Positions 24,902 through 51,155 of a DNA stretch of 64,000 nt are shown piece by piece (position 1 is the stretch's first letter; each line of letters opens with the position of its first letter). This DNA is from Paramoeba atlantica (taxonomy: Eukaryota; Protista; Discosea). The notes beneath the pieces are model-generated. The model was not told the DNA's origin. It did no database searches and saw only the letters and a program-made list of their open reading frames with translations. The stretch covers positions 251,929-315,928 of the forward strand of contig CDRNVI010000071.1 in assembly GCA_977017575.1 (NCBI GenBank), written 5' to 3'. The translations under genes and the position numbers were made by a program.

Positions 24902-24954
24902 CAGATATCGTGGAGCCATGCTTCTCGGCTCCTTCCTATGCAGCCATACGAATT

Positions 24955-25659: not shown

Positions 25660-26196
25660 TCATACTTCGATATTTGTTTTCTTTCCGGGAGTGATACGCA
25701 TCTTTAATGCAGGCTTTTTCTTTACCACGTCAGTCACTGCGGCGCGAATTGTCTCTTCTGCTAGCATGGAGCAGTGCAATTTCACGGGAGGCAGAGACAA
25801 CTCAGCGGCAATCTCCCTGTTCGTGATTGACAGGGCATCCTCAATTTTCATTCCAATAATTTTTTCTGTAGCCAGCGAGCTTGAGGCCATGGCGGAACCG
25901 CACCCAAATGTTTTAAATGTAGCATTAGTAATGGTCCCATCGTCATCTACCTTGACTTGCATTTGCATCAAATCCCCACATTCGGGGGCTCCGCATAGAC
26001 CTGTGCCCACGTCCGGTGAAGATTTGTCCATGTTGCCAACGTTGCGCGGGTGAGCATAGTGATCTATAACCTTTTCACTGTACTTCGTTCGTGTGGGGGT
26101 AATATACAGTCGACGATGTATGGCAGCGGACGCGGAAACAGAAAACCGAAACGAGCGCCTAGCGGCGAGAGAGAACTGCCCTACGCAACGTCTCAT
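25660..26196 (-). CDS. ISU1: Mitochondrial Fe-S cluster scaffold IscU/Isu1
   Basis: YSEKVIDHY..PRNVG, GAPECGD, FKTFGCGSAMASSS and LPPVKLHCSMLAE, with an Arg-rich presequence. Confidence 0.97.
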   Translation of the reverse strand: MRRCVGQFSLAARRSFRFSVSASAAIHRRLYITPTRTKYSEKVIDHYAHPRNVGNMDKSSPDVGTGLCGAPECGDLMQMQVKVDDDGTITNATFKTFGCGSAMASSSLATEKIIGMKIEDALSITNREIAAELSLPPVKLHCSMLAEETIRAAVTDVVKKKPALKMRITPGKKTNIEV

Positions 26197-26391
26197 AAAA
26201 ACTTAAATAAAGCAAATGATCTACGTGTATTATGGTTCAATAGAAAACGTTGTATTTACGACCTGTATATCCAGTACGTAATAACCAAAGAATTTCCAGA
26301 TTCCAAATGAGATACTCGTTCTCGACACAATCAACGCCTCAAGCAGGAGCCGAAAACTATACAATAACACAACACACGCAAGAAAGAACTA

Positions 26392-27444
26392 CTAAAACGG
26401 GCGGTGAAAACTGTACATCATACCCTGGCCCGTAAGCCACGTGTTTTTCATCCTTAAATCCTGGACGTGGGCGACGTAATCCCGGCTGTCGGCGTATCGT
26501 GGCATCAGTCCCTCTGTCACCCAATACCTCGGGGCCCTGTCAGAGGTGAGATCGGGTCGCTGACCGGAGCCCTGGCAGTCGATCGTGAGCCCTTCATCCA
26601 GCACCGACATCTCTGAGATAACCTCGTGGGTACGAAGGGCACGAAAAGAGTTGGGGGGAATTTGTGGCACCGCCACCCCGGCTGGGGGTGTGAGATTGTA
26701 AGGGGGAATAAAAGGCATCACCTTACCCGGAGGGGTAGGCGGCACGGCACGGGACACGGAGTCTGGGGCGCGAGAGGCGCTGTCTCGGTGTTCACGCCGG
26801 AGATTACGCATCGCACGCTCCACCTCACGACGGAACTCGTCCGCCTCGAATCCATAGACCCCGCGGGTGGGGGCACCGCGACGGAGCGCGGCGTGCATGT
26901 CCAGAATCACGTGGTGAGGTTCGCGACCCATAAACGCACGACGGAAGATATCCGCTGAGCGGCGGGTAGAGACCCGCGAGGGGCGGGGGGAAGAGGGAGT
27001 CTCGGCGCCGAATGAGACTCCTGGGGAGGTCCCCGTGGGACTCTGCTTGCGATAGTATACGTGAAAGGCCTTGTATACGTTATATCGGTGCCAGATTGAC
27101 TCCTCGCTGACGGTTGAGTCGTGTGACGGATCAGGTGTGGAGGCCGTAGTGGTCGGGGGAGGCGCGAAACGCTGTCGAGCCTTATTGTATCGCGACCTCT
27201 CCCGTGTATTTCGAAGACACTGATAGGCCTCTGTGACGGCACGAAAACAACGTTCCGAATCCTCTTTTTCTGATGGGGAGGCAAGGTCAGGGTGACTCTG
27301 AAGCGCAATGCGGCGGTAGGCCACTTTGATTTCCTCTCCAGTGGCCTCCGGTTTCACTCCAAGTCGGTCATAGTAGTCTGTCATGTTGTACAGAGCTAGA
27401 TGCGAGGCGTCAGCCGTGCGAAGACCTCGGGAAGCAAAAAGCAT
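26392..27444 (-). CDS. J-domain (DnaJ type III) protein, possibly mitochondrial
   Basis: DYYDRLGV..IKVAYRRIALQSHPD..F..VTEAYQCL. ATG at 27444 gives a presequence-like MLFASRGLRT; the track start is GTG 27471. Confidence 0.9.
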   Translation of the reverse strand: MLFASRGLRTADASHLALYNMTDYYDRLGVKPEATGEEIKVAYRRIALQSHPDLASPSEKEDSERCFRAVTEAYQCLRNTRERSRYNKARQRFAPPPTTTASTPDPSHDSTVSEESIWHRYNVYKAFHVYYRKQSPTGTSPGVSFGAETPSSPRPSRVSTRRSADIFRRAFMGREPHHVILDMHAALRRGAPTRGVYGFEADEFRREVERAMRNLRREHRDSASRAPDSVSRAVPPTPPGKVMPFIPPYNLTPPAGVAVPQIPPNSFRALRTHEVISEMSVLDEGLTIDCQGSGQRPDLTSDRAPRYWVTEGLMPRYADSRDYVAHVQDLRMKNTWLTGQGMMYSFHRPF

Positions 27445-27884
27445 ATAAAGGTAAGAAGAAGAATGAATCACCCTAAGCTCAGTTATTGTAATCTTCGCTC
27501 AAAAATTAACGAAGTAAAAATGAATAGAAATTTAACTACTGCGATATCAAGTAGTGCAGTAATTAATTTTTAAATACTACCCGTGTTGTCTTTATAGACG
27601 AAAAAATATTTGGTACAAAGGATACAAAAGAAAGAATACGAAGGCAACAAAGGAAAACGGCTCCGCGTCAAGAAGTACGTTGGACACCAAGATGCCAAGT
27701 TTGCCTTTTAGAGGGGTATATGAAGCTGAACACTCCTGTACAATGGCGTAAACTCCACTGTGAGAATCTCTTGAAGCCGTGAAAGCTCTAAGAAATGTCT
27801 TGTAAGCTTGTGTTGTCATTGAAAGTACCATAAAAATCGACGCCATCGAGAAAGTAACTCTCATTTACTCCCCAGTTGCCAAAT

Positions 27885-28643
27885 TTACATCATGCGGCCT
27901 CCAATACTCTTCCAATCTAATTCGAATGATGTCTTCTTTCCAAAAATCTTTTTGTACACCTTTCTTTTCGACACCCTCTTTTTTATTACTTTTTCAGTTG
28001 CACCTGCTCTTAAATCTGATTTTACCGACCTTAAGTTCCGACGAAATCTGGTGTTCTTTTTTCTCAGAAGAAACTTTTTTCTTGATTTTGAAACGATGTT
28101 AGGTATCTTGGAATTTTGGCATAATCGTATACATTTGGGCTTTCTCACTATTTTTCTTGGCCTTCCACTCTTTTTTGGTGATGTTGGAACGATGATAGGT
28201 GTCTCGGAATTTCGACTTGGTTGTCCATATTTAAGCTCTTTAAATATTTTTCTTGGTCTTCCCCTCTTCGCCTTTGGAAGTTCTGTTACGTACTGCTTTT
28301 TGAAGGACATCGATTTGTTTTCTGACCCTATTCTTTCGTGCACTTTCTTTCCTTCCTTTTTTTGGCGATTTTGGCGATCACATTTCACCGTTTTTTTCCC
28401 TAGTGGGGGAGCGTTATTTTCAGTACGAGTGGCAGATCTCTTGATTTTTCTTTGAATTCTAAACCCGTTGAACAGATGCTGGATGGACATGTGAGCACGT
28501 AGTGCTAGTGAGGAGTCTGGGCCTTGTTCCGCTAGCTGTGAAATTTGTTGCAGCATAGATTTTCCATGTTCCTTTTGTTGAAATTCCGGATGGTAGGTAC
28601 CTTTGGATACCAAGCGTAGTTGCATTACTGCTCGTCGTAACAT
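27885..28643 (-). CDS. Basic Lys/Arg-rich protein with two AT-hooks and a mitochondrial-type presequence
   Basis: MLRRAVMQLRL N-terminus; KRGRPRK and KSGRPRK sit in two repeats of about 32 aa. Confidence 0.7.
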   Translation of the reverse strand: MLRRAVMQLRLVSKGTYHPEFQQKEHGKSMLQQISQLAEQGPDSSLALRAHMSIQHLFNGFRIQRKIKRSATRTENNAPPLGKKTVKCDRQNRQKKEGKKVHERIGSENKSMSFKKQYVTELPKAKRGRPRKIFKELKYGQPSRNSETPIIVPTSPKKSGRPRKIVRKPKCIRLCQNSKIPNIVSKSRKKFLLRKKNTRFRRNLRSVKSDLRAGATEKVIKKRVSKRKVYKKIFGKKTSFELDWKSIGGRMM

Positions 28644-30391
28644 TAGCTTACAAGTACGCGTTCAAAAAAGAATCTTGTCAGCTAAACGTGTAGAACTACT
28701 ATTTGGAAATATTTTTTGGAACAAGAGGTCACAAGAAGAACACCTAATTTAGAACAAGAGTCATATTTTGCTGTAAAGCAGTGACAGATAACTAGGGGGC
28801 GTGTCATAACCGATATGTAAGGGGTGTAACTACAGTACAGGTGCGACATACAGTGGTCGTCACCAATCCGAGAGTCACGAAAATGAGAATGACCCTCAGA
28901 AAAATGACAAATTATCGTGTCAACGTTCAACTCAAAAAACGCCTTGAAAATGAGAATGGATCAAAGTGATGTTGTGCTAATCCGGGCCTCTAAAAAGAGG
29001 CATCTGCACAAAAATTCAGCTACGGCAGTGGTGGGGGTGATGACCTTGCCGGAGGGGAGACGTTCTTTTTTTGGGTTCTCTGGATCGAAATCTCAGCGTC
29101 TAGGCATTATGGTTTTTAAAAGAATTTGTTTTTAAAAGAATTTAGCATTTTTTTTGAGGCCATTGTCGACTACGACAGGGCCATAATAGGAAAAAGTAAT
29201 CAAAAATGAAGAGTTCCTTCACACAAAAGAAAGATAATAATGATCTTTCACCACAGTAATTTAATCACTGCAGTGACGTGAGGTTGGCGCAGAGATACAT
29301 GTACATGATGTATTCTACTTGTACATGATGTATGTCTCTCGGTGTGACGGCCGATATCATCGGCGCATAACCCGCATATGACGGATATCACACGGAGAGT
29401 GGAGTGCGAGGTGAGACGAGTCGCCCATCGGTCATGCTACATCACGTATAGCCATGGTTCATGTTGCAACACGGTAAAGCCGTGGATTCATGCCGTCAGA
29501 TGGTCTATTGTGGGACATGATGCATCATGAGGAGGTCCGTTACTGCCGCACTCGCCACATCATGTAGGGAGATAGGGGTGCAAGTTCGCATCCCCTATAC
29601 ACGCATACAACGTGTCCTCCCGCTGTAGCACGCCCAGTGGTCCTCAAGGGGGGGCACCATGGGGCACCCCATGGAGCTCCCGGGAGAAGAAAGCGCGAGA
29701 AGGAGAGAGCCTGGGAGGGGTGAAGAGTCCGAAGTGCGTTCCCTACTTTCACGACTAAGAGGGACAGAACAAGGATGAGACTGATTCGTTTTCTTGATGG
29801 AGATAAACGTTGCCTTCATGTTACATAAATGAAAATGGAATTCGCGTAAGATAGGGGAAAAAGAAAATTGAAAGTGGAACGCAAGTTTCAGGTAAGGGAA
29901 AGCTATCAGTAAAAACGCAAATTATGAAGCCTGTAGATGAAAATTTAAAGTAGAATTCGTAGCGAAATAGAATTCTTAGTTGCAAAAGATAACGTATTGA
30001 CGTTGTTGGAGCTTTAAGGAAAGTTATGTCAACCAATATACATTGTAATATAAAGGGAATATGTTCTTTAGAGGAATGTTCACAAATAAGTCAAGCAAAG
30101 TTTTGGTAGTGCTAGAAATGCATTGTGTAAGATAATTTTATTTCCATGTGTTGAGACCGTATGTTTTTCGGTATTGAGGATTGCAGCATGATGGTATCTA
30201 TTGGCGTAGTAAACTTATAACAAATATGCGCGCATGGGTTAATCGAACTCGACTATGATAATTTTGCAGCGTATTCTTCGAAATTTCGTAATTCACTCAT
30301 ATGTGATAACCAACCCTTTCGGTGACAATCTATTGATTTGTACGATGTAAAAAAACTATCTGCTTCATTCTATTCCTTGTTTCCTCCTGGA

Positions 30392-30958
30392 TTAGTAACC
30401 ACGTCCTCGTCCGCGACCGCCGCGACGCATGCCACGTCCCCCGCGCCCTCCTCGGCTTCCACGACTTCCGCTGCCCTCATATCCCGTCCACGGACCCTCT
30501 CGAGGAGGACCACGGGGTCGCGGGGGTCCAGAGGAACGGCGGGGGTCCTCCTCGTCCGGGACCACTAGCTCCGCAGGCAGAGGGGACTGATACCCCGGGT
30601 GGGTCTTCTTCAGCGGTTTCTTCGAGAGCTTGATGCTGATCACGGAGCGCTTACGTTCACGTCCCTGGGTATTCGCCCCTTCCTCGTCCTCACTAGCAGC
30701 ATCGTAGACGGTCTCGCTGGAGATGTCAGTAACTTGGTGGAGTCCCGCGACGCGACGCTTTACGATCTCGGAGACGTTGACAGCAATGTAGATGGCACGT
30801 CCCATGCCGCGGATGGTGACCTCATCGTAGACCGGGCCCTCCTCGCCGTCCACACCGGGGCCTCCTTCCAGCAGACGTCGGATGTATGTGATGTACGCCC
30901 GCAGGGGTCGGTGCACCGTCACGCGTACTTCATTCGGGGCAGAGTCGCGCTCAGACAT
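30392..30958 (-). CDS. Alba-domain RNA-binding protein with an RGG tail (ALBA3/Rpp25-like)
   Basis: EVTIRGMGRAIYIAVNVSEIVKRRVAGLHQ..SVISIKLSKKPL..HPGYQ.P with a C-terminal RGG tail. Confidence 0.92.
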   Translation of the reverse strand: MSERDSAPNEVRVTVHRPLRAYITYIRRLLEGGPGVDGEEGPVYDEVTIRGMGRAIYIAVNVSEIVKRRVAGLHQVTDISSETVYDAASEDEEGANTQGRERKRSVISIKLSKKPLKKTHPGYQSPLPAELVVPDEEDPRRSSGPPRPRGPPREGPWTGYEGSGSRGSRGGRGGRGMRRGGRGRGRGY

Positions 30959-31678
30959 AGTGAGATAGGAAGAGAGTAGTAATAGAAGAAGAGTGGAATA
31001 GGTTGATAGTTTTAAAATTAGGTGGCGAGCTCGTAGGTTACAGAAAAAAAGTAGAAAGCAAGAAAAAAGGTAGAAATTTGCAAGTTTTACAAAATCAATA
31101 TCACATGCGGGAGTAATACTCTCGTTCGTATACTCAGTATACGAATTACACGCAAGTGTCTAGTAAGTTAAGTTTCTTTTAGAGGTCAACGTTTAGAAAA
31201 AATTGAATACGAAGCAAGAATATAATAATTCTGAAGTAGCGTAGAATTATGTTCTGCGAAAAGATATAAAAATAAAAATGAAAGCGGAGCAAGTCTGGTG
31301 GAAAGATAAAAGCGGGTATACATTACATTATTTTTAAAAATTACTACTACTTGCGTACTTACTGCTTGTATGGTTGTGAAAATTAGTTTCTAATTTTAGC
31401 AACAATAAAGGAATTTTAGCATAAATAATAGAACAGCAATAAATTATATATATTTATAATTTATATCTAATATAGCTATTTTCATACATACATGTATGAC
31501 ATGCATAACAGCCAGGTTTACTACATTTGTATTTTAGTTCGGTTATGCAATAAGCCTTGGTTGTATGTGTTACATACAAAGAGTAGCATGTTCTTTAATA
31601 ATACAACAAATTGTGTGTACATACAACAAATTGAAGAGAAAAAAATATCAAAACTTAAGAAGGTTTGTAGCAAGAAAA

Positions 31679-33979
31679 TCAAAAATCCATGAAAAAATCC
31701 AAATTTGATCCACTGTCAAGTCGCCGAGTTGCTTTTTTAAAATCTGGTGACGTTTTGCGCGAAGAGGCTTTAATCCGCCCCGGTGCGGGATGGCTTACTG
31801 ACGTAGCGGTGATTTTGGAAGTGACTGACGTGCTCAAGGGTTTATGGAGAATTTGCTTACTGACGTGATGAGTGGTTGCCGGCGTACGCATGGAAGCAAC
31901 ACGGTCTCTACGGTGTACGATAGGACGCAAGTTCGACGCTTCTGTCACACTTTTTCCGGATGCATAACCGTTGCCTATACTTTCTCGCCGCAAAGAATTA
32001 AGTCGCTTTTCTAAGTCGAGCTGCGTAACAGGCGTTTCTCGCTTTTCGGGCATAACTTCGGCTTTTGATGGGATTTGAAAAGTGATATTTTTCGATGAGT
32101 TAGATGCCATAGCGGGCGATGTCGTCTTTACTTTACGAATCTCGCTGGGACTGCGGAAAAGAGAACGAGCCGTGCTTATGGCTTGTGCTCGAAATGCAGA
32201 AGGAGAAGCTGATGCCTTGTTCTTGCAAATTGAATTCTTCTCTGGCAAAGCAGATTGTAGCCCAGCACCGACTTCAGGAGTCCGAGACAGGCTTGCAGCA
32301 GGGGGGGTCGGCGGTGGAATAGTAAAGTTGAGTTTAGGGGCATCCTTCTTTAAATTGTACGGTGGAACCACGGGAGCACCCGGGCATTCGATACAATCAC
32401 TTAATTTGTTTTGTTGCACGGATTCGAGCGATGTATCACACTTTGACTCTAGAAGTGCTGGACTTCGGATTCGCTTCTTCGTATAGTCAGAGACTTTGAT
32501 TGTGGGTACATGTTCTGTGAGTACTGACATTGCATTCGACTTCCCCAAACGTTTTTGAAGGATTTCTAGACTTTTCTTAACCTCACAATTTGCTTCCAGT
32601 GCGCTACGCTGTATGTTAAAGTTGCCTTTATAAAGGATAAGGCTTTCATGCTCCTCGTTTGAAATTTGAACACGTTCCTGAAACTCGCGTGAGAGCGTAA
32701 AGCTCACCTGGTTCATGTATTGCAGGGAAGACTGTGCTATCCACTCACGACAGTGCTCCTCTTCGCATCTCAGCCCAAACAGAATTCGCTGCATCTCTTT
32801 TTCCCTTCGCACTTCGCGCTTGCGTCTCAGCGCATCGCAATGTTTCTTGTGACAATTTAATTCAATTTTCTGCTGGGCACTATATTCTTCTTCCAATGAC
32901 TTCAGTTTCGCACTGCAATTTATAACAGCCTCTTGTTTATTGAATACATATCGCACGATGTGCAATAACTTTTTAGCGTTTTCAAAAGAAGCCTCCTGAG
33001 CTGTGCGAGAACTGTTGCATAGACCTCCAATTTGTTTTGACCATTTTTCTAGCACGCCTGACGTTAGCACTTTGTTAATCGTGTTCTCGAGAAAGATCAT
33101 CTCCTCATGACAACAGCTTTTCGTCGCCATCAAACTTTTGCAACGCTCTTCTTCGTGCGCGAGAGCCGTCCGTAGACAAAGCTGTTCATCCCTTTTCCCT
33201 TTAAGAGAAATCTCGAGATCTGCAATGTCCTCCTTTTTCAAAGTTCGTCTCTCAGGAAAATTTGAAATAAATTTTTGAAGGGGAATAGACTCACTCTGAA
33301 TGAGGTTAATTTCAGGGTAAATTACATCAGATGAAGAGAACTTATTTTCAGCTTTCACAGCGCCCCTCTCATTACCCTCGTGTAGGACCAATATAACTTT
33401 GTCAATTTTCCCCAATTCTTTATCCAAACCGTCGTTTCGGACCTTTTGCCTGTGCAGAGCTTCTGTGACACGTTTCACGTCGCACGTAAGAATAAGCTGA
33501 CTAAATTTCAACACCTGTAAATATTTAACAGCTTCAATAATATCTCTACGCTTTTCTTCCGCTCGGTGGTACTGCATTTTTTGATTTTGAATTTGAGACT
33601 CCAATTCCAAGGCAGAAAAAATCGTCATTATGTGCTGCACACGAGCTTCAGCGTTAGCTCGTAAGCTTTCAATGGAAGAACATATATTATGTGCTGCCTC
33701 GTCTTGTTCCATATGTACACTCAACTGCAGCTCCAACTTTGTAAGACTTTGCTGAGTCCGTTCACTGGAGAGCTTATTGTAATATATTCCCTCTTTAAGC
33801 TCATTACCTTTGCAGCATAGCTCTTCATGTAGATCCTGTGCCTTAAACAGAGCCTCACGAAACAGGCGGTTGAGGTTTCGAGACTTCAGTTCAATTTCTT
33901 CTTGAACCGCAGTTTGAGCAGCGTTTTGTTGCAGCAGACTGGTAGTACACTGTTCTAAAAACTGGAAACTGTTTAACAT
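31679..33979 (-). CDS. Hypothetical coiled-coil protein, 766 aa
   Basis: Long ORF, E/K/Q/L-rich N-terminal two thirds, low-complexity C-terminus. Confidence 0.78.
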   Translation of the reverse strand: MLNSFQFLEQCTTSLLQQNAAQTAVQEEIELKSRNLNRLFREALFKAQDLHEELCCKGNELKEGIYYNKLSSERTQQSLTKLELQLSVHMEQDEAAHNICSSIESLRANAEARVQHIMTIFSALELESQIQNQKMQYHRAEEKRRDIIEAVKYLQVLKFSQLILTCDVKRVTEALHRQKVRNDGLDKELGKIDKVILVLHEGNERGAVKAENKFSSSDVIYPEINLIQSESIPLQKFISNFPERRTLKKEDIADLEISLKGKRDEQLCLRTALAHEEERCKSLMATKSCCHEEMIFLENTINKVLTSGVLEKWSKQIGGLCNSSRTAQEASFENAKKLLHIVRYVFNKQEAVINCSAKLKSLEEEYSAQQKIELNCHKKHCDALRRKREVRREKEMQRILFGLRCEEEHCREWIAQSSLQYMNQVSFTLSREFQERVQISNEEHESLILYKGNFNIQRSALEANCEVKKSLEILQKRLGKSNAMSVLTEHVPTIKVSDYTKKRIRSPALLESKCDTSLESVQQNKLSDCIECPGAPVVPPYNLKKDAPKLNFTIPPPTPPAASLSRTPEVGAGLQSALPEKNSICKNKASASPSAFRAQAISTARSLFRSPSEIRKVKTTSPAMASNSSKNITFQIPSKAEVMPEKRETPVTQLDLEKRLNSLRRESIGNGYASGKSVTEASNLRPIVHRRDRVASMRTPATTHHVSKQILHKPLSTSVTSKITATSVSHPAPGRIKASSRKTSPDFKKATRRLDSGSNLDFFMDF

Positions 33980-34111
33980 AATATGGTGTATGTACTAAAA
34001 AAGAAAGTCAAGATACGATGAAATTCATTGAATCAATTACATCCATGATTCATTTAATTCATAATGATATTATGAATTATTACACGTGAATAGCCAAAGT
34101 GCAACATTGTG

Positions 34112-34840
34112 CTACGTGCATGCGCGCATGTTTTCGACATACTCTTCGTATAGCTCTGAAAGAATTTTTCGTAGCAGGAAAGGGTTTAAACCCATGACCC
34201 CTTCTCTAGAGCCCTCAAGACGAACTACACACTTTTCCAAATCTGCATCCTCAATTACAAACCCACCACTACATTGCATGGATACCCCTCTTGCCAATAG
34301 AGTTTGAATAGTAGCATTGGGAATATCTCCGAAATGAACGCGATTTATGTCTTGAATGTATCTTGCACTACGCTGTTCATCAGAAGACTTAAAATTGTGC
34401 ATACCATTGAGATCAACTCTTTCGACACACATCCCACCAATTGTTTCTAGAAAGCTATTTCGATAATCACTAAGAAATTCTTCGTTTTGATTGCGGTCCA
34501 AAGGTTTTTCACGAATCACGCCTTCAAAAACAGTAACTTGATCCCCAGTGACAAGGAAAACGATGTTATCACCATGTAATTTTCTTTGACCACTTGATAA
34601 TTCATTTCGCAATATCTCCTTTACAGCGCTCAATTTTGCATAGCTAATCATTTTTACCAATTCCTCAGCACTATCACTGCGAATCAGTTTCTCGTTTATA
34701 TTGGGAGAAATGCATTCTATAGCGGGAATCTCTTCCAATGTAAAATGCTGACGAATAATTCCAAGACGAAAAGGTGAGCTAGACCCTAGAATTAGTTTTA
34801 ACTTGTCGGGGACGTTTACTCCATGTGAAGATTCCGCCAT
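34112..34840 (-). CDS. Maf-family nucleoside-triphosphate pyrophosphatase
   Basis: LILGSSSPFR, INEK, AKL, GDQV, IREKP, SGGFVIE, EGS..VMGL. ATG at 34840. Confidence 0.9.
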   Translation of the reverse strand: MAESSHGVNVPDKLKLILGSSSPFRLGIIRQHFTLEEIPAIECISPNINEKLIRSDSAEELVKMISYAKLSAVKEILRNELSSGQRKLHGDNIVFLVTGDQVTVFEGVIREKPLDRNQNEEFLSDYRNSFLETIGGMCVERVDLNGMHNFKSSDEQRSARYIQDINRVHFGDIPNATIQTLLARGVSMQCSGGFVIEDADLEKCVVRLEGSREGVMGLNPFLLRKILSELYEEYVENMRACT

Positions 34841-34930
34841 GACACAATGAATTAATATCTGCTTCAAAAAATTATTTTAAGATTATTTTTTTGTACTACT
34901 CCCTAAACCCCCGCCCATATTTTAAGAATT

Positions 34931-35075
34931 TTTAGGTTCTTCGTTAAGCGCGGCGACGTAATGGGTAGAGAATACGTCTCCAACCACACCATTTTTCCGA
35001 CACAAAAAGACTCCTTTGAGTCCGAAAATTACTTTTTCACCTTTTTCGGTCAAAAATGGGTCATTTTGGGAGGCG
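34931..35075 (+). repeat. Repeat family B, internally deleted copy
   Basis: The left hairpin arm is joined directly to acgtaatgggtagagaatacg..gggtcattttgggagg. Confidence 0.75.
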
Positions 35076-35130
35076 CCCTCGTATCAGAAGAATTAATAAT
35101 TATTCGTTTATAACCTACGTTGCATTTAGA

Positions 35131-35919: not shown

Positions 35920-37672
35920 TACCATTTGTTTCGCCAAATTGGATTTTTTTTTAAAACATTTTTCCGAAAAAATCCGAACTTGGCGGACCCGTCCTGTGGA
36001 TACGCGGGGGGGGGGTCACCCCCGGGTAGGGGGGTGAAAAATGCGCGTCAAGACCCCGGCTACCCCTTCTGAGGTTCTTTTTCGAAAAATATTTTTTTGC
36101 AAAAAAATTTGCTCGACCATGACCCCCCCCTGGACCCCCCTTTTTTTTCAATTTTTTTTTCCCGATTTTTTTGAATTTTTCAGTTTTGGACCACCGGAGC
36201 CCCCTTTTATATTTTTTTCTTCTATTACTGTGCCCCCCCCACTTATAGTGCCGCGGTTTTCGACCAAACGGCACTATAAGTTGGGGGTGCACTGTGTTTC
36301 AGTTCGATTTTATTAAAGTCCATTTATTTTTCACAGAGTACATTTTTTTCAAAATTGGTACATTTGTTGGTGATTCGTGACGAAGAAGCACTGCCCCCTA
36401 TGCTTACCTTCCTCCCGCGCATGCCCCGAGATGCGCACGGCACTCGTCATCGATTAAGAGCGACTTAACTCCTATAAGACACTCGCAAAACTTCATAAGC
36501 TTAACCCCTGGTCCATCATTGAAACTTTTTGCTTTTTTCCTGAAGATTAACCGGAAACGTTTAAGAATACCTTCCGGGACTACAGTAAAGTAAACACTTT
36601 TGGTCAAGGAGGCTAAAGGGCATATGACTGAATACTACAGATTACTTTGCACTCCTTTTCCACGTTTTCTGATCTACTTTACTACTGTTCTTCATCCGAA
36701 ACATTCGAAAAAATACATCCAAAAAAGTTGTAATTAGCTTTTTTAACCCCTACCTGGCTAGGGGGGGTAGAGGGTCGCTCGAGTGAAAAGGAACTCGGAT
36801 TCGGAACGATTGGGTCGAAAAACAGTGGTATACCAAATATTTCCAAAATCGGACAAATTACAAGACCTGTAGGGGGGGGGGTAAAAGACGGTGAACACCA
36901 CTGTAGCTTTCTACGCCGTTGTTTCCACAAGATACCCCTTCTTGAAACCGTGACGGTGAAAGTGAAGCATTATTTCACATAAAAAATATTTTGTTTCGTT
37001 AATTTTTTTATGTGTTCTAAGTGTTGCCTTATCATATTTTACGGGCACTGAAAGTATTTTTCTGACATTTGTTTACATACAGCTGTACTTTTTTCGCGGT
37101 GACGGTACGTTTGATAGTGGGAAAGAAGCGCGACATAATCGGCTGAAGTTCGGCGCAGAAATTGTGAAAAGTAAGCTAAAGAGAGGAAAACATGAAGATT
37201 ATGCCCTCCGTCGCCTGTTTTAGCACCTCAAATGACATTGCGAGAACGTAGAAATCGTTCTAGAACAAGGGCAAGAGAGTTAATTTTTTCTTTTTTACTA
37301 AAATAGGGCGATAATAAATGTTTTAAAAAAAGTATGAAATAATGCTTCACTTTGACCGCCGTGACACGTCTCCAAAATGACGCCCCCCAAAATAGGTGTC
37401 CTGGCAAAACCAGGCAAAACGTGGCAAAACCTGGAAAAACCCGGCAAAACTTAACAGGTTTCAACCCTCTTACTCTACCTTTTTGGTCAAAAGAAATAGG
37501 TCAATTTTTCTGACATTTGTTTTTCAAAACGGCACTTTAAGTGGGGGGGTACCCCGCGGCACTATAAGTGGGGGGGCACAGTATATTACTGTGTTCCTCC
37601 TTATATTTTCACTGTTTTTGTTCACTTTTTCAATAATGGAGGGTAGAGTGGTAGTTATACAACCACCGCAAT
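35920..37672 (+). repeat. Repeat family C, copy 2, interrupted by a 1354-bp TIR element
   Basis: 35920-36227 plus 37582-37672 is colinear with 7940-8311. Confidence 0.85.
36228..37581. mobile_element. Non-autonomous DNA transposon, about 29-bp TIR CTGTGCCCCCCCACTTATAGTGCCGCGG, TA target duplication
   Basis: Filled site cttctatTA[ctgtg..cacag]TAtattactgtg versus empty site cttctatTAtattactgtg at 8215-8233. Confidence 0.92.
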
Positions 37673-37685
37673 AAGGGAACACTAA

Positions 37686-37758
37686 TTAAGGGAAGTGTAG
37701 TTGGCAGACGGTGGGCCTTATAACCTGCAGGATGGGAGTTCGATTCCTGCTATCGACA
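37686..37758 (+). pseudogene. Degenerate tRNA-like head (A/B boxes)
   Basis: A-box-like aagtgtagttgg, CTTATAA at the anticodon-loop position, B box GTTCGATTC. It ends ATCGACA, as does the 16572 element. Confidence 0.55.
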
Positions 37759-37759
37759 A

Positions 37760-38107
37760 AACTCGCAACCTGGCGGCCTCACTACAAAGGGAAAGCGATC
37801 AGGAGTGCCTTCAAGGCCCACACCGAACCCCGCTCCCCTGGAGTAACGACCCGGAACCGCAGAGCTGAACCAGGCTCCAGCGCAGCCGCTAAATTGCAAG
37901 CTGCTTACACAAAGGAGGCTTGAGATACAGCCTACACGATGCAACGGGGTTAGACGCCCGTCCTGGTAGCTACGGTTGGGTAGCCGTGCTCGGGCCGCAA
38001 GGCGTCCAGTGCCGTCTGGGAAGGGGGTAGCAAGACGATGAAGGTCGGTGACCTGAGACTCTACCCTAACGGTTGGCGCTGCATAGCCCTCCGTGTCTTC
38101 TTTTTTT
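37760..38107 (+). ncRNA. Candidate structured ncRNA of about 340 nt ending in an oligo-T run, family unknown
   Basis: GC-rich island with hairpins aggct/agcct, gctac/gtagc, ggcc-GCAA-ggc, cgtct/agacg, aggtc/gacct and a long-range helix cagcgc-agccg/cggtt-g-gcgctg, then TTTTTTT. Confidence 0.5.
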
Positions 38108-38142
38108 GAAAATCATTTTCCCTTAATCAGTGTAAATCTTAG

Positions 38143-38331
38143 CCCAGGCTAAAATGGAACGGGGAGATACTAAAGGCAGCTTTGAAAAACCACCACAAAC
38201 TGGAACGGTATCTCCCGTTAAATATTCTTTTGTTACATTAGAATGCTCTACAAACCGGGAGATACCGTTCCAGTTTTGTGGTGGTTTTCCAAAGGTGCCT
38301 TTAGTATCTCCCCGTTCCATTTTAGCCTGGG
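38143..38331. repeat. Fold-back palindrome P3 with four GGAGATAC sites
   Basis: About 75-bp arms and a loop of about 37 nt. Confidence 0.9.
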
Positions 38332-38439
38332 TCTAAAAGTGCTTCTGTTGAAAAAGGGGCGGAGTCGGAGGAGGAATATTTTTCTTATGTTTTTCGGAGC
38401 ACAAATGCCGTGATAGCCTTCTATACTAGGTCCCAAAAT

Positions 38440-38768
38440 ATTGAAATACAGTAGGGCAGACGATTTTGGAAAAATATTTTTCTTGCCATTTTTTTCGCGA
38501 AGTTGATATTTTTTTGAAAAAAAAATCTGAAAACCGAACTTGGCGGACCTGTCCTGCGGATACGCGGGGGGGTCACCCCCGGGCATGGGGGTGAAAAATA
38601 CGCGCCAAGACTCCGGATACCCCTTCTGAGGGTTTGTTTCAAAAGGGAAGTGTTAGAGTATGCCGCGGCGATGATTTTTCACCCCTCCACCTGGGGGTAC
38701 CCCCCTAGTACACGCAGGAGTTATTAATATTTTGTTTTTCAATTTTGGACCGCCGGAGCCCCCTTTTA
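38440..38768 (+). repeat. Repeat family C, copy 3 (3' truncated)
   Basis: Colinear with 7925-8210; it breaks at ggagcccccttttaTA. Confidence 0.8.
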
Positions 38769-38966
38769 TACCGGTGTAACGGTTATTAGGGATAAAAGTA
38801 ATTAAGGCAGAACGAATTTAAAAATTAAGTATTGCCTTAATTAAAGTTGCCATAATTAAAGTTGTCTTAATTTTAGAGCGGGGGGGCACGCGTCTGTGGT
38901 GATCGGCAGAATATGGCAGAAATGGGCAATAATCTGCTGTTAATGAGCACTAGCGGAGAAAAAAAG

Positions 38967-39659
38967 TCACATGTAGAAAAAAAAAGACCAGCCGTTTACT
39001 TTCAACTTTCCGTTCACGCACTCCGTGAGGAATTTCCTTTTTTCTTCCCGATCGTCGTCTTCAATTCCTAGTCTGTTAGCTCGACACTTTAGTTCAACCT
39101 TTAACTGGTTGTTCATGCTTTCTACGGTGTTCGTAGAAACACCTTCGCTCGTAACCCACTCTACTCGGTGGTTTATAAATTTGTGGTTCACAAGGGAACC
39201 GAGTGCCAATCTCGCACGCCATCCGTCAGTCTTGACCACAGTGCGCGTCCCAGCGGCCAAATGCAGCACATGGAGCGTCATTGTAGACTCCGATCGATTC
39301 GCTAGGCTCTTTACAAACACTTCCTGTGCCTGATCGGTCACATTAGTTACCACCAAAGTGTGGAACCATCGATGGCCCTGCTTGCGCACGGCATGGCTGC
39401 GATTACATCCCCCCCTCTTCACCTTACTTGTACAGGTCTCATCTTTTTGCATATAATTGACGGTTCCTCCTGCATTAAGCCAACGAATATCGTGAGCTTG
39501 TGACACTAATAATATTATTTCTTGAGAGAAACGAGTAACGGTCTTGACGTTCACCTTTGCTTCGTTAACAATAAACTTGTGTGGCAATGCTTCTGCTATA
39601 CCGTACGCCGTCTCCGTTTGCTGAACAAGGGTCCTTCCTTCCAGAATTTCGCTCGACAA
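38967..39659 (-). mobile_element. Merlin/IS1595-family DDE transposase, probably 5'-damaged
   Basis: QKDET..KVKRGG, HRWF, LANRSESTM, VKTDGWRA, HKFINH..WVTSEGVSTNTVESM..QLK follow the IS1595/ISXO2 pattern with D, D and E present. The ORF starts at TTG just after in-frame stops. Confidence 0.82.
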
Positions 39660-39744
39660 GCGTGTCTATCAGTACAAAGCCAGTAGTTCCCTTTCTGTTG
39701 CAACTTCCTCTATGTGACAGGATTTCCGCTTCGCGGGGCATTTT

Positions 39745-39851
39745 TTTTTGGACCGGAAGTATAAAAGGGGGGTGCTGATTTTTCGTCTGGATGAAAACGG
39801 AAGCATAAAGGTGGGGGGTGACCCCCCTGAAGCATAAAGGGGGGGTGACAG
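39745..39851. repeat. Solo TIR end related to the 5740 MITE
   Basis: gaagcataaagggggggtgacag|TA with internal gaagtataaaaggggggtgctgattttt (cf. 5783-5812). Confidence 0.7.
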
Positions 39852-40051
39852 TATTTACTAGATTAGAAAGATCGTCAAAAAACAGAGAAAAGGAATAAGA
39901 ACGATAAACTATCCATTTCCTCCGAAATTACATATTTTTTATATTTAGAGCTAAGTGAATTTTGATTAAGAAGTCTTTTTTGTTTGGTACATGCAAATCT
40001 TAGCGATAATAGAAATCAAAAAACAAAGCTCAGCCTTTTTTCTAAGGCCAT

Positions 40052-42100
40052 TTACTGGCGCAGCGGCTTAGCAACCTTTTCACGTTTTTTTCCAATATCA
40101 ACGTGATACATACTTTCTTTCATACGATGACTAAACCTCTCATCAATCGAACCAATTTCTCGAGCTGCGCGGTTCATGTCGATGGAAGAAATAGGAGTAT
40201 CTTCATTAAGCTTCCCATTAAGATTTGTGGCGCTACCGAGACAGGATATTTCAGGTTGAAACTGTAGGCCTTGACGAGCTAAACGACGGGCTTGTCGTTC
40301 GATTCTATTTTCTCTTGCTTGCGCTTGTTTCTTTTGTTTGTGTAGCCTACGCTTGCGACTGCGTTTAGAAATATCATTTTCCGATCGTACGTCTTGCATC
40401 TGTTCATCTGAGTCAACTGTATTCTCCAGGTTATTTTTCTGAAAATTTCTATCTGGACTTTCCGCAGTATCTAAGTTGCTATTTCGAATTATGGTTTTCA
40501 AATCCTCAGTGGAGCATGGCGTTTCTACTCTTGTTTCCGTTTCTTCAACATTTTCGGTCTTAGAACGCTGTTTTTGACGTTGTGCCTTTCGCTTAACATC
40601 TCGTCGTTCTCCAACTGTTTTTACGTTTTGCAATGCAAGATGATACATTGATTCCTCGTGGATCTTTTCCACCACAGCATCGTCATGAGCGGTAAACTCC
40701 GTGTAAAAGTCACCATTGTTGGTGGAGTGATTAGGAAACTTGCTGACCTCACTCGATACGCTCTCTAACTCATCAATGTAAGGCTCACTAGAAATCTTCG
40801 TTGAGGACCCGTCCTCTTGCAAATCCTTTTCATTATCGTGGTCTTTATCTTCCGTTTGATAACCTTCTAGCAGGCATGCGTATTTTTCCTTTTGAGAGCT
40901 ACAAGATCTTCCCATAGTAACTTGACTTTCTTCGCTTTCAGATGCTACATAGGCATCCAAGTCACCCATTTGCATGTCTTTCATTGCAAATGCATTCTTG
41001 AGTGCAGCAGTACGCTTTAGGTCAGTCATGTCCCAAAGCAAGGAAGCCGCACTTGGAGTATTAGACATACCAGATGTTTCCCCTGTACTCGGTAAGATCC
41101 TTTCATGAGTTTGTAGTGCGGAGAGGGCAGGGGAGAGGACATATTCAAGAGGCAGAGTGTGACAATGATCAGAGACATTTTCCTCGTCAAAGTTCATTTC
41201 TTGTGGAACGTATCTTAGAAACATTACAATTCCAGCGAATTCCACTTCTCTCTCATTACATTGCTCGTATAATTCGCTAGCTGTTGCTGGTGTGTCACAT
41301 TCGATTATGGCATAGTAAAATTTTTTTCGCAGCTCACCGTATGCAATAATTTTTTCCGGATCCATATCGTTGTTGATGTCCGCCGAAGTGTCCGCCGAAT
41401 GAAATTCTTCTTCATTGGGAACTTCCGATTCTTTTTTGAGGCGTTTCATTTTCAAATGCGGCCTCTCGCTCTGGATTTTAGAATTTGACTGAATGCCCTT
41501 TTCTGCACGCCAAACATTAGGAACCTGTTCCCCTTCTCGATGCTGAATCCCCACTTCACTGACATAAATTTTTACGTCTCGTACTGCTCCACCATGTGGG
41601 GTAAAAGAATGAAATAATGCAAAAAGATCAAGGGCCGTTACGTAATCCCACTCGAATTCAACTAACGCAAGTCGTGAAGTAGCCTCTATAGTTGCATCCT
41701 CCGAGGGACACTCCGTCCCATGTTCAGTGCTTGAGACTTGAGGTACCATAGCGACTGAGTTATTATCTGACTGATTCCCTGAAAACTCCCCGATAGAGTC
41801 ATCATTTCCATCAGAACAGATTTCCATATGTTCCTTATGCATAGTTAAATGATTCTTAAAGCGTATGTCGGAAGCTGTGTCAAGCGAAGCGTCAGTAACA
41901 TTTTTATTCACGAAATGGTTTTTCTTCGGCAATTTGCATACGCGTTTTTTGCTTTCTCGGTCATTGTATTGCACTCGAGAGTTTGAATCACGATATAGCG
42001 TACGAAATCGGGGGTCGTGTAGCTCTCTAAAGCGATTGTCATTTGTACCACGAATTTTCCGACTGCGCTGAGTCGTCGCTTTTTGCGTAATTTCACACAT
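40052..42100 (-). CDS. ESF1: Pre-rRNA processing protein ESF1
   Basis: TSRLALVEFEWDYVTALDLFALFHSFTP.GG.V..V.IY.SE.G, FYYAIIECD..TA..LY..C, LRYVP. First ATG at 42100. Confidence 0.88.
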   Translation of the reverse strand: MCEITQKATTQRSRKIRGTNDNRFRELHDPRFRTLYRDSNSRVQYNDRESKKRVCKLPKKNHFVNKNVTDASLDTASDIRFKNHLTMHKEHMEICSDGNDDSIGEFSGNQSDNNSVAMVPQVSSTEHGTECPSEDATIEATSRLALVEFEWDYVTALDLFALFHSFTPHGGAVRDVKIYVSEVGIQHREGEQVPNVWRAEKGIQSNSKIQSERPHLKMKRLKKESEVPNEEEFHSADTSADINNDMDPEKIIAYGELRKKFYYAIIECDTPATASELYEQCNEREVEFAGIVMFLRYVPQEMNFDEENVSDHCHTLPLEYVLSPALSALQTHERILPSTGETSGMSNTPSAASLLWDMTDLKRTAALKNAFAMKDMQMGDLDAYVASESEESQVTMGRSCSSQKEKYACLLEGYQTEDKDHDNEKDLQEDGSSTKISSEPYIDELESVSSEVSKFPNHSTNNGDFYTEFTAHDDAVVEKIHEESMYHLALQNVKTVGERRDVKRKAQRQKQRSKTENVEETETRVETPCSTEDLKTIIRNSNLDTAESPDRNFQKNNLENTVDSDEQMQDVRSENDISKRSRKRRLHKQKKQAQARENRIERQARRLARQGLQFQPEISCLGSATNLNGKLNEDTPISSIDMNRAAREIGSIDERFSHRMKESMYHVDIGKKREKVAKPLRQ

Positions 42101-46780: not shown

Positions 46781-48790
46781 TTAGTCTACCTCTTCAACCT
46801 TGGGTCCCGAGCTCGCCGGTGGGGCCGGGGCGGCTCCCCCGGCACCTGGGAATCCCTCCGGCATTCCTCCAGGAAATCCCCCGGGCATCCCACCGGGAAA
46901 CCCTCCCGGGGCTGCACCCTCCGCCCCTGGGGCGCCTCCACCCTGCTGGTACATCTTGGTCATGATGGGTGTGCATTTCTGCTCCAGCTCCTTCTGCCGC
47001 CCTTCGTACTCCTCCTTGCTCGCCTCCTGACTGGACTCAAGCCACTTGATGGTTTCCTCCACGGCATCGAGAAGGGTCTGCTTGTCGCCCGCGTCCAGCT
47101 TTCCCCCCACATTGGGGTCATTCGCGGTGTTCTTCATGCTGTACGCGTAGTTCTCGAGTCCGTTCTTCGCCTCGATACGCTCACGTTGCTTCCGGTCCTC
47201 CTCCTCGAACTTTGCGGACTCGTTCACCATGCGCTCGATCTCCTCCTTGCTGAGACGCCCCTTGTCGTTGGTGATGGTGATCTGGTTCTTCTTCCCCGTG
47301 CCCTTCTCCTCGGCGCTGACGTTCAGGATACCATTGGCATCGATGTCAAACGTGACTTCGATTTGTGGCACCCCGCGCGGCGCGGGTGGAATTCCCGAGA
47401 GATCGAATGTGCCGAGAAGGTGGCAGTCGCGTGTCATCGCGCGCTCACCCTCGAACACCTGGATATGCACCCCCGGTTGGTTGTCGCTGTACGTGGAGAA
47501 GGTCTGGCTCTTCTTGGTCGGGATCGTCGTGTTGCGCTTGATCAGGGACGTCATGACACCCCCGGCGGTTTCGATACCCAACGTCAGCGGGGCGACATCC
47601 AGGAGAAGAAGTCCCTCCGTCTGCTTACTCTTCCCGCCGGTGAGGATGTAGGCTTGCACCGCGGCACCGTACGCCACAGCCTCGTCCGGGTTAATACTCT
47701 TGTTGAGTTCCTTTCCGCCAAAGAAGTCGGAGACGAGCTGCTGCACCTTGGGAATACGAGTCGAACCACCGACCAGAACCACGTCGTGCACCGTGCGCTT
47801 GTCGATCTTCGCATCCGTCAGGACTTGTTCCACCGGCTTGAGTGTGGAGCGGAAGAGGTCCGCGCAAAGCTCCTCGAATCGCGCACGGGTGATGCTCGTG
47901 TAGAAGTCAATCCCCTCAAAAAGAGAGTCAATCTCCACGGAACTCTGAGCCGCGGAAGACAGAGTACGCTTGGCTCGCTCGCACGCGGTGCGAAGACGGC
48001 GTAGTGCTCGCTGGTTCTGCGACAGATCCTTCTTGTGCTTTCGCTTAAATTCCTCGACAAAGTGGTTCACGAGACGGTTGTCAAAGTCCTCACCACCGAG
48101 ATGGGTGTCTCCCGCCGTGGCCTTGACCTCGAAGATTCCACCATCGATGGTGAGCAGAGTGACGTCAAAGGTGCCGCCTCCGAGATCAAAGATGAGTACG
48201 TTCCGTTCTTGTTGGTCCGAGATCTTATCCAGGCCGTACGCAATCGCCGCCGCCGTGGGCTCGTTGATGATTCGAAGCACTTCCAGTCCGGCAATCGAGC
48301 CCGCGTCCTTCGTGGCCTGTCGTTGGGAGTCGTTGAAGTACGCCGGGACGGTGACCACCGCCTTCTTGACCTCCTTACCGAGATATGCCTCCGCAATCTC
48401 CTTCATCTTAATCAACACCATGGAGCTAATCTCCTCCGGCGTGAAGGTCTTTGCCTCGCTCTTGTACTGGACCTCCATCACGGGCTTCTCGTCCCCCTGG
48501 GAACGTACCTTAAAGGGCCAGTGCTTCATGTCGCTCTGAACAACGGAGTCGGAGATCTTACGCCCGATTAACCGCTTCGCATCAAACACACTGTTGGTCG
48601 GATTCATCGCTACCTGGTTCTTCGCGGCATCCCCAATCAGACGTTCAGTGTCCGTGAAGGCCACGTAGGACGGAGTCGTGTAGTTCCCCTGGTCATTCGC
48701 AATGATTACCACACGCTCGTTCTGCCACACCCCAACACAGGAGTAGGTGGTCCCGAGATCGATACCAATAGCTCCTTCGTACGTCATCAA
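46781..48790 (-). CDS. HSP70: Cytosolic HSP70, copy 1 (last in transcription order)
   Basis: [16 protein letters not shown]...GGMP repeats...GPKVEEVD. Confidence 0.99.
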
Positions 48791-49145
48791 GTTAATAATA
48801 AAATGGAGAGATATGCAAAAGCAATGAAGCTATAGAATTAACTACATTTGAATTCAAGTTCCAACTAACAGACGTAATAATGCCGTGATATTGGGCGCGT
48901 AGAGGTCTTTTTTAAAGAACATATTGAAGCCAAAGCGGTAAAAAACACGACGCACTCATTTGCTCCAAAGTTGTTAGAACCAAAGTACGCTAAACAAGGT
49001 CAAACTAAATTATTTTACCCCAATTTTCCGAATTACGCACAAATAATTGCGTGGTTTACATTGTTAAATAATTTATTTGTCAAATATGTGATCCGAAAAG
49101 AAAAAAGGAAAACAAGCAATCCGTTGGAGCAGTCCTGCCCTTGAA

Positions 49146-51155
49146 TTAGTCTACCTCTTCAACCTTGGGTCCCGAGCTCGCCGGTGGGGCTGGGGCGGCT
49201 CCCCCGGCACCTGGGAATCCCTCCGGCATTCCTCCAGGAAATCCCCCGGGCATCCCACCGGGAAACCCTCCCGGGGCTGCACCCTCCGCCCCTGGGGCGC
49301 CTCCACCCTGCTGGTACATCTTGGTCATGATGGGTGTGCATTTCTGCTCCAGCTCCTTCTGCCGCCCTTCGTACTCCTCCTTGCTCGCCTCCTGACTGGA
49401 CTCAAGCCACTTGATGGTTTCCTCCACGGCATCGAGAAGGGTCTGCTTGTCGCCCTCGTCCAGCTTTCCCCCCACATTGGGGTCATTCGCGGTGTTCTTC
49501 ATGCTGTACGCGTAGTTCTCGAGTCCGTTCTTCGCCTCGATACGCTCACGTTGCTTCCGGTCCTCCTCCTCGAACTTTGCGGACTCGTTCACCATGCGCT
49601 CGATCTCCTCCTTGCTGAGACGCCCCTTGTCGTTGGTGATGGTGATCTGGTTCTTCTTCCCCGTGCCCTTCTCCTCGGCGCTGACGTTCAGGATACCATT
49701 GGCATCGATGTCAAACGTGACTTCGATTTGTGGCACCCCGCGCGGCGCGGGTGGAATTCCCGAGAGATCGAATGTGCCGAGAAGGTGGCAGTCGCGTGTC
49801 ATCGCGCGCTCACCCTCGAACACCTGGATATGCACCCCCGGTTGGTTGTCGCTGTACGTGGAGAAGGTCTGGCTCTTCTTGGTCGGGATCGTCGTGTTGC
49901 GCTTGATCAGGGACGTCATGACACCCCCGGCGGTTTCGATACCCAACGTCAGCGGGGCGACATCCAGGAGAAGAAGTCCCTCCGTCTGCTTACTCTTCCC
50001 GCCGGTGAGGATGTAGGCTTGCACCGCGGCACCGTACGCCACAGCCTCGTCCGGGTTAATACTCTTGTTGAGTTCCTTTCCGCCAAAGAAGTCGGAGACG
50101 AGCTGCTGCACCTTGGGAATACGAGTCGAACCACCGACCAGAACCACGTCGTGCACCGTGCGCTTGTCGATCTTCGCATCCGTCAGGACTTGTTCCACCG
50201 GCTTGAGTGTGGAGCGGAAGAGGTCCGCGCAAAGCTCCTCGAATCGCGCACGGGTGATGCTCGTGTAGAAGTCAATCCCCTCAAAAAGAGAGTCAATCTC
50301 CACGGAACTCTGAGCCGCGGAAGACAGAGTACGCTTGGCTCGCTCGCACGCGGTGCGAAGACGGCGTAGTGCTCGCTGGTTCTGCGACAGATCCTTCTTG
50401 TGCTTTCGCTTAAATTCCTCGACAAAGTGGTTCACGAGACGGTTGTCAAAGTCCTCACCACCGAGATGGGTGTCTCCCGCCGTGGCCTTGACCTCGAAGA
50501 TTCCACCATCGATGGTGAGCAGAGTGACGTCAAAGGTGCCGCCTCCGAGATCAAAGATGAGTACGTTCCGTTCTTGTTGGTCCGAGATCTTATCCAGGCC
50601 GTACGCAATCGCCGCCGCCGTGGGCTCGTTGATGATTCGAAGCACTTCCAGTCCGGCAATCGAGCCCGCGTCCTTCGTGGCCTGTCGTTGGGAGTCGTTG
50701 AAGTACGCCGGGACGGTGACCACCGCCTTCTTGACCTCCTTACCGAGATATGCCTCCGCAATCTCCTTCATCTTAATCAACACCATGGAGCTAATCTCCT
50801 CCGGCGTGAAGGTCTTTGCCTCGCTCTTGTACTGGACCTCCATCACGGGCTTCTCGTCCCCCTGGGAACGTACCTTAAAGGGCCAGTGCTTCATGTCGCT
50901 CTGAACAACGGAGTCGGAGATCTTACGCCCGATTAACCGCTTCGCATCAAACACACTGTTGGTCGGATTCATCGCTACCTGGTTCTTCGCGGCATCCCCA
51001 ATCAGACGTTCAGTGTCCGTGAAGGCCACGTAGGACGGAGTCGTGTAGTTCCCCTGGTCATTCGCAATGATTACCACACGCTCGTTCTGCCACACCCCAA
51101 CACAGGAGTAGGTGGTCCCGAGATCGATACCAATAGCTCCTTCGTACGTCATCAA
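49146..51155 (-). CDS. HSP70: Cytosolic HSP70, copy 2 (KLDEG variant)
   Basis: Same protein as copy 1 except A>E near the C-terminus. Confidence 0.99.

Follow-up and report, generated by a model that had tools for sequence, protein, structure and literature searches.

A tRNA-headed SINE copy, very probably inserted into a pre-existing palindrome, mimics an element bounded by terminal inverted repeats

What kind of mobile element carries tRNA-like promoter boxes between the arms of an inverted repeat? In the window, by which we mean the whole 64,000-nucleotide stretch of DNA analysed here, an inverted-repeat scan recovered the 16-nt repeat on which the original prediction had been built. Its arms, at 37679-37694 and 38118-38133, are complementary at 15 of 16 positions and are spaced 423 nt apart, and a repeat of this kind gives two matches in the window, as compared to 0.03 expected by chance. 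Between the arms we located both predicted promoter elements, an A-box-like TAGTTGGCAGA at 37698-37708 and a B-box-like GAGTTCGATTCC at 37736-37747. Three readings had been offered for this arrangement: an RNA polymerase III (Pol III) RNA cassette mobilised by a DNA transposon, a tRNA-SINE that had landed in a small MITE, and a captured host non-coding RNA. The second is essentially right, as target sites without the insert exist in the genome. We consider it very probable that the segment 37695/37697-38100 is an old, 5′-truncated copy of a tRNA-headed, (CTT)n-tailed SINE, which inserted into a palindrome that was already present.

In order to find related copies, we searched the 45.7-Mb genome assembly with the 455-nt segment, both arms included, and scored the best 40 of the 209 first-look candidates. 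These 40 are 93-100% identical to the query and lie on about 25 contigs, and nearly all of them align over query positions 16/19 to 420-430, corresponding to window positions 37697 to about 38105, inside the arms. Consistently, an 18-nt motif from the 3′ region of the SINE has 138 matches in the genome, as compared to none for the reversed control, and dispersed copies are present on more than 40 contigs. The family accounts for about 140-210 matches in the assembly; as tandem or segmental duplications have multiplied many of the copies, there are considerably fewer independent retropositions than matches. Exact-pattern scans of the metagenome contigs for the SINE gave no matches.

The repeating unit is about 420 nt long. 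Its tRNA-like head contains the A and B boxes and is followed by a GC-rich body, which leads into a (CTT)n tail. It contains no open reading frame of 60 or more residues. The flanks of 30 copies revealed that typical copies start with GCGGTGCGGGC-GTAGTTGG and end with ...CCCTCCGTGT / CCGTGT(CTT)n, and that the length of the tail varies from 2 to about 30 units. At about 14 loci, an automated pass found target-site duplications (TSDs) of 7-14 bp that directly abut both ends, such as ATTGCATTATCGC (L003), ATTAATATCATCG (L013) and TTCCGGTTCTGAG (L023). Truncation at the 5′ end is seen in other copies, which start at consensus position 29, 148, 174 or 218; a further copy is reduced to its last 37 nt. 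The shortness of the unit, the lack of an open reading frame, the A/B-box head, the microsatellite tail, the variable TSDs and the 5′ truncations together point to a tRNA-derived SINE that moves by target-primed reverse transcription. The family is real and fairly young.

How closely does the head resemble a tRNA? The consensus built from the 44 aligned copies shows an intact T-arm that contains a perfect B box, GGTTCGATTCC. It also has an A-box-like TAGTTGGTAGA, and the acceptor and anticodon stems are unpaired. On a conventional reading, the loop CUUACAA would yield UAC as the anticodon. The Infernal tRNA model (RF00005) assigned 22.3 bits (E 0.035) to the full-length copy L013, below the gathering score of 29, and the window copy had no match at E<=10. 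ARAGORN found no tRNA genes in the whole window and none in eight loci. These results agree with the predicted inability of the head to fold as a tRNA, and “tRNA-like, decayed” is probably the correct description of its sequence.

In the window copy, which lies on the forward strand, the copy alignment places the head at 37697-37758, without the first 10-11 nt or so that are common to the full-length copies. The GC-rich body follows at 37759-38096 and ends with ...CCCTCCGTGT, and the tail is reduced to a CTTC remnant at 38097-38100, as identified from the 44-copy alignment and the flanks. The B box differs by one change from the perfect GGTTCGATTCC of the family (10 of 11 positions match), and both the B box and the T-arm contain private changes. 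The window copy and its counterpart on contig C46 (see below) are 95.6% identical to the majority consensus, as compared to 96.5-98.6% for the 34 other full-length matches, and the diagnostic bases of the window copy are shared with the more diverged members of the 44-copy alignment. The window copy is an older insertion. The automated flank pass recognised no TSD around it; a missing TSD is common among 5′-truncated insertions.

Where, then, do the arms of the inverted repeat come from? Nine fetched loci (L046-L054) carry the same two 16-nt arms, only 21 nt apart and with taaGTTTTTTTGAAAACCATT between them, and have no SINE. The loop of these loci holds a run of seven or eight T residues between the arms. 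The unfilled sites read ACACTAATTAAGGGAA taa[g/t/a]TTTTTTTGAAAACCATT TTCCCTTAATTAGTGT, while the filled site in the window reads ACACTAATTAAGGGAA gt, followed by the SINE from about position 10 to ...CCGTGTCTTC, and then TTTTTTTGAAAATCATT TTCCCTTAATCAGTGT. The comparison shows that four bases in the middle of the target loop, TAAG/TAAT, were replaced by the SINE. At the filled 5′ junction, their place is taken by the GT at 37695-37696 on the forward strand, which is either filler or, allowing for one change, positions 10-11 of the SINE consensus. The left arm ACACTAATTAAGGGAA (37679-37694) and the right arm TTCCCTTAATCAGTGT (38118-38133) are thereby identified as target DNA, and the forward-strand segment 38101-38117, TTTTTTTGAAAATCATT, is the rest of the 21-nt target loop. 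When unfilled, the palindrome has 25-nt arms that are 88% complementary and 3 nt apart. A second genome search, with the 71-nt segment that follows the SINE body (38100-38170), matched the right arm and loop (38101-38141) to 16 other genomic sites without the SINE. The SINE does not include the inverted repeat, and its insertion target is better described as a palindromic module of about 53 nt that belongs to another repeat. Since the SINE landed inside an existing palindrome, the inverted repeats never moved it.

The same comparison bears on the T7 run, which the original prediction had read as the terminator of an RNA-like unit. The run is present, at 38101-38107, but its assignment as the terminator of that unit does not hold, because the unfilled loops contain it as well; the T-run is the target loop's own.

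A composite DNA transposon or MITE, in which the 16-nt repeats are the ends recognised by a transposase and a Pol III RNA gene is the cargo, would give the same outline at this single locus. The inverted repeat is real and its presence at exactly this position by chance would be improbable, and a fragment of a Merlin/IS1595-type transposase gene (38967-39659) and active MITEs lie nearby. However, among the best 40 matches, the repeats together with the SINE recur at one other locus only, in the homologous segment of contig C46. At nine loci or more, the two arms occur 21 nt from each other with no cargo between them. The arms are missing from more than 100 SINE copies, which are marked instead by TSDs of variable length and by (CTT)n tails. 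The other copies do not keep the inverted repeats with TA flanks, as had been envisaged for such a cassette, but start and end inside the arms and have their own TSDs of 7-14 bp. In addition, no fixed-length duplication, such as TA, is present outside the arms. The bases that directly adjoin them, AATAAGGGA to the left and AA.T.TTA to the right, are conserved in both the filled and unfilled sites and are parts of the module rather than a TA duplication. The TA after the right end, which had been likened to that of the TA elements in the window, belongs to the TAA.TCTTA that follows the right arm in the conserved module. Taken together, these observations make the transposon-borne cassette a most improbable reading.

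The likeness to MITEs and other fold-back elements is confined to the setting: a short inverted repeat brackets the segment, and true MITEs and a Merlin-type transposase gene are found close by. In contrast to the repeats of such elements, the inverted repeat in the window does not bound a repeated unit, as the palindrome exists without the insert and the insert spreads without the palindrome. A true fold-back element, Stowaway-like and separate from the SINE, was found by the inverted-repeat scan immediately to the right, at 38143-38331, with 57-nt arms that are 96% complementary. Its Rfam matches are below threshold (MIR5512 with 59 bits, and MIR812), and both are plant miRNA families derived from MITEs. 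A further SINE copy, at L025 (C21:757754), is located in the end of a MITE related to this one and has an 11-bp TSD.

The left context of the target is also repetitive. The forward-strand segment 37597-37676, outside the SINE, is the end of a very abundant dispersed repeat that terminates with ...CCACCGCAATAAG, as determined by a genome search and by reading the junctions. This search gave 977 first-look candidates; of the 40 matches that were scored, the majority end at query position 76-83. On contigs C73 and C23, two inverted copies of this repeat (found at L033-L042) are 5.6 kb apart with their CCACCGCAATAAG ends pointing outward, which is the pattern expected of a TIR element of about 5.7 kb. 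The palindromic module often adjoins the CCACCGCAATAAG end of this repeat, in either orientation (L045, C73, C23 and the window).

Hairpins themselves do not seem to attract the SINE. When the empty sites of 15 insertions were reconstructed, their folding was no more stable than that of 400 random 80-mers (Mann-Whitney p = 0.60), and the integration thus shows no preference for hairpins; we accordingly rejected hairpin-targeted integration as a mechanism.

Why does one other locus share both the arms and the SINE? At C46:36808-37260, both arms and the SINE are present with 97% identity to the window element, and this is the only other such copy among the best 40 of the 209 candidates. The flanks of this copy are collinear with window 36179-38686, with about 91-95% identity in the main blocks and with indels, for example at 36955-37357. 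Farther to the left, C46:17000-33950 corresponds to window 18138-35090 with 99.25% identity over 16,965 bp, and to the right, the ESF1-like gene of the window (40200-42000) recurs at C46:52631-54434 with 99% identity. Since the C46 copy sits in a collinear segment, it is the same insertion, inherited rather than transposed. Contig C71, which contains the window, and contig C46 thus carry two versions of one chromosomal segment, either as haplotigs or as a large duplication. The two segments differ by large structural heterozygosity or divergence. Between the SINE flank and the ESF1-like gene, C46 (37963-52631) contains about 13 kb of extra DNA as compared to window 38686-40200. This extra DNA holds an intact LINE open reading frame of 1566 residues (L056:3990-8690), followed by a small hairpin, and its counterpart in the window is the Merlin-type transposase fragment at 38967-39659. 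The shared SINE insertion serves as a marker for the relationship between C71 and C46.

Does the body encode a structured RNA? The original prediction, which was titled as an unknown structured RNA, described at least five hairpins and a long-range helix. We compared the folding of the window copy with that of dinucleotide shuffles, and the minimum free energy of -149.7 kcal/mol is no lower than that of the shuffles (-150.5 +/- 6.7 kcal/mol, z +0.11). A near-consensus copy gave z -0.91, and its antisense strand gave z +0.62. The hairpins are thus no more than what a GC-rich sequence is expected to give. The covariation analysis that had been suggested for the aligned copies likewise lends no support: RNAalifold on 44 copies returned a covariation term of +0.26, with a compensatory double change in 1 of 89 pairs. 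As retroposed copies decay neutrally, this test has little power in either direction.

The Rfam searches gave the same picture. No Rfam 15 family reached its gathering score in the whole 64-kb window, and the covariance models of SRP, RNase P/MRP, snRNA and Y RNA had no match at gathering score, just as no resemblance to SRP, RNase P/MRP or snRNA motifs had been recognised by eye. At E<=10, the matches over 37300-38500 and in a full-length copy were at chance level, and the sub-threshold tRNA match was the only one on the SINE unit; the one low-E match within 37300-38500 is the neighbouring fold-back MITE. The body belongs to no Rfam family and has neither excess stability nor covariation, and neither a structured RNA nor a captured host non-coding RNA is supported. 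The hairpins are those to be expected of a sequence of about 60% GC; a structure may be needed in the source RNA, but nothing supports one.

These results also weigh on the view that the locus is a functional non-coding RNA gene or the master (source) gene of the SINE, with the head as its promoter, a structured body of 340 nt and the T7 run as its Pol III terminator. In trypanosomatids, tRNA-type A and B boxes drive other small RNA genes. The window copy has kept its A box and 10 of the 11 B-box positions, and the T7 run lies four bases past the body, so that a discrete Pol III transcript is possible in principle. However, the T-run was already present in the unfilled sites, the first 10 nt or so are missing, and the changes in the B box and T-arm are private to this copy. 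Moreover, the window copy is among the most diverged ones and not near the consensus of the young copies, and the younger copies largely lack its diagnostic bases. Together with the absence of an Rfam family, excess stability and covariation, these features make a functional or source gene at this position very unlikely.

Which machinery would have spread the family? The length of the TSDs and the 5′ truncations indicate an endonuclease-type LINE. In animals and plants, tRNA SINEs with simple-repeat tails are mobilised by RTE- or CR1-type LINEs. The genome contains at least 1851 candidate reverse transcriptase loci, of many families. We sought the terminal 15-48 nt of the SINE in non-SINE elements, and found no LINE with the same 3′ end. 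The genome has 76 exact CCGTGT(CTT)3 sites; 18 of them were not obviously SINE and were fetched, and all 18 proved to be SINE-derived. A genome search with a variant 48-nt tail returned SINE copies alone, and a BLASTN comparison of the SINE consensus with the fetched loci (including LINE fragments and the other SINE-like family) and the window detected only copies and fragments of its own family. Neither of the two LINE 3′ regions that were read (L056 and L070) has a (CTT)n tail. As the partner LINE was not found, it presumably shares only the (CTT)n with the SINE, or is diverged, extinct or unassembled.

One candidate for a LINE end was rejected. This 48-nt variant of the SINE tail (“X”), 87.5% identical and followed by (CTT)n, is directly joined to the T-run of a different retroposon family on contigs C65, C11 and C24 (L008:271-335, L007:775-842), and probably also on C8 and C52. 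Every instance that was read has the same downstream flank, and the variant tail is consequently one duplicated composite, which could have arisen by a template switch or as an extremely truncated insertion.

Two further observations concern other retroposons of this genome. A second abundant family of short retroposon-like sequences (L059-L068, e.g. C65:12121-12371), the one to whose T-run the variant tail is joined, gave 488 first-look candidates, and its members end with GGAATGATTTGG(A)T(8-18), an oligo-T instead of an A-rich tail. An APE-type LINE is represented at L078 (C12:171400-171680, reverse strand) by its 5′ end, an open frame with an exonuclease-endonuclease-phosphatase-like N-terminus (...DLMALQETRL...). 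Directly adjoining this frame is a diverged relative of the SINE (82% identical), which is 5′-truncated and has three internal deletions.

The lack of a LINE with the same 3′ end would be accounted for if the family had spread by other means, either by recombination and tandem amplification only, or through a tyrosine-recombinase or R2-like element. A large share of the copies in fact lies in tandem arrays, on contigs C105 and C10 (with a period of about 3.96 kb), C40 and C65. The arrays span the whole of C105, C10:3557-27343 and C40:962-998 kb and have a SINE copy within their repeating unit, and the copy on C105 is split by an insertion of about 400 nt and has a CTT tail of 29 units. Against such a spread, the family is distributed over more than 40 contigs with individual TSDs of 7-14 bp, variable (CTT)n tails and 5′ truncations, which are the marks of an endonuclease-type LINE. 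We therefore regard spread without a LINE as highly improbable, and favour LINE-dependent retroposition of the SINE.

In what kind of genome does this family reside? The window contains long intronless open reading frames on one strand, including homologues of NAT10, ESF1 and DnaJ. A tandem array of at least seven HSP70 genes of the same length (669-residue open reading frames, 2365-bp period) extends on the reverse strand from 46781 to 63996, at the end of the window; the HSP70 protein sequence is present in ENA/EukProt. The motif CAGTTTCTGTACTTTGTTG, which corresponds with one mismatch to the 3′ portion of a kinetoplastid-type spliced leader, occurs at 11 dispersed single sites in the genome (e.g. 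C3:645510 and C99:99065) rather than in one array, as compared to none for the control. The one-strand intronless frames, the HSP70 array, the Merlin fragment and the spliced-leader motif make the genome look like one of kinetoplastid type. Among kinetoplastids, the Merlin superfamily has been reported only from Bodo saltans and Perkinsela (PMC8101967).

How does the family compare with known systems? Like the tRNA-derived SINEs with simple-repeat tails, it has a non-coding unit of about 420 nt with internal A and B boxes and a body unrelated to the head, as well as a microsatellite tail, TSDs of 7-14 bp, 5′ truncation and more than 100 copies. It differs from them in residing in a kinetoplastid-type protist genome, in having no detected partner LINE that shares its 3′ end, and in having a head too decayed for a tRNA call. 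With RIME, NARTc and SIDER, it shares the character of short, non-autonomous kinetoplastid retroposons and, presumably, the dependence on LINE machinery. Those elements derive from ingi/L1Tc-type LINEs by internal deletion, end with poly(A) tails and lack a Pol III head, whereas the family described here combines a (CTT)n tail with a tRNA-like head.

The trypanosomatid genes for U-snRNAs and 7SL RNA offer another parallel, as there too an A/B-box module adjoins a non-tRNA sequence of small-RNA size. There, however, the tRNA or tRNA-like gene is located upstream and is oppositely oriented, and the RNA encoded downstream is a member of a conserved family. In the SINE, the head and body form one co-linear retroposed unit, and the body has no Rfam match.

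Surveys of trypanosomatid transposable elements list only the ingi, CRE (SLACS/CZAR), VIPER and TATE clades (PMC12278014, PMC4728078), and with Merlin added, these are also all that the kinetoplastid surveys consulted report (PMC12278014, PMC4728078, PMC8101967). In the Bodo, trypanosomatid and kinetoplastid literature that we searched, there are no reports of a tRNA-derived SINE.

On the basis of the anatomy of the copies, we propose the following course of events. The internal A and B boxes of the head, which is tRNA-like but decayed, would direct the transcription of the source copies by RNA polymerase III. A LINE would then supply the endonuclease and the reverse transcriptase that make DNA from the SINE RNA at a nicked target. 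This target-primed reverse transcription would yield the (CTT)n tail, the frequent 5′ truncations and the TSDs of 7-14 bp. Both the Pol III transcription and the dependence on a LINE are inferred from this anatomy. As the filled and unfilled sites show, the window copy integrated in the T-rich centre of the palindromic module, where the U-rich tail of the RNA could have paired with an A-rich primer on the bottom strand at the T-run. The integration left the 16-nt arms of the module flanking the SINE and the T-run directly behind it. The filled site was later inherited by the two homologous chromosome segments represented by C71 and C46.

A bolder reading combines three statements: that the family is the first tRNA-headed SINE in Kinetoplastea, that the LINE recognises it by the (CTT)n alone, and that the window copy is expressed as a discrete Pol III RNA of about 410 nt. 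As a whole, we consider this combination unlikely. Judging from the literature searched, its first part is likely, namely that this is the first tRNA-headed SINE family described in Kinetoplastea and that a LINE with the same 3′ end may not be needed for its spread. Its last part, expression of the window copy, which sits on the pre-existing T7 run and has kept its A and B boxes, is unlikely.

What looked like a new class of element, a Pol III RNA cassette borne by a DNA transposon, is explained by a nested insertion and calls for no new category of mobile elements. A tRNA-headed SINE family seems to be unreported for the relatives of trypanosomes. The comparison of the filled and unfilled sites provides a clean example of how a SINE in a palindrome mimics an element bounded by terminal inverted repeats, and this example is useful for the annotation of this repeat-dense genome.
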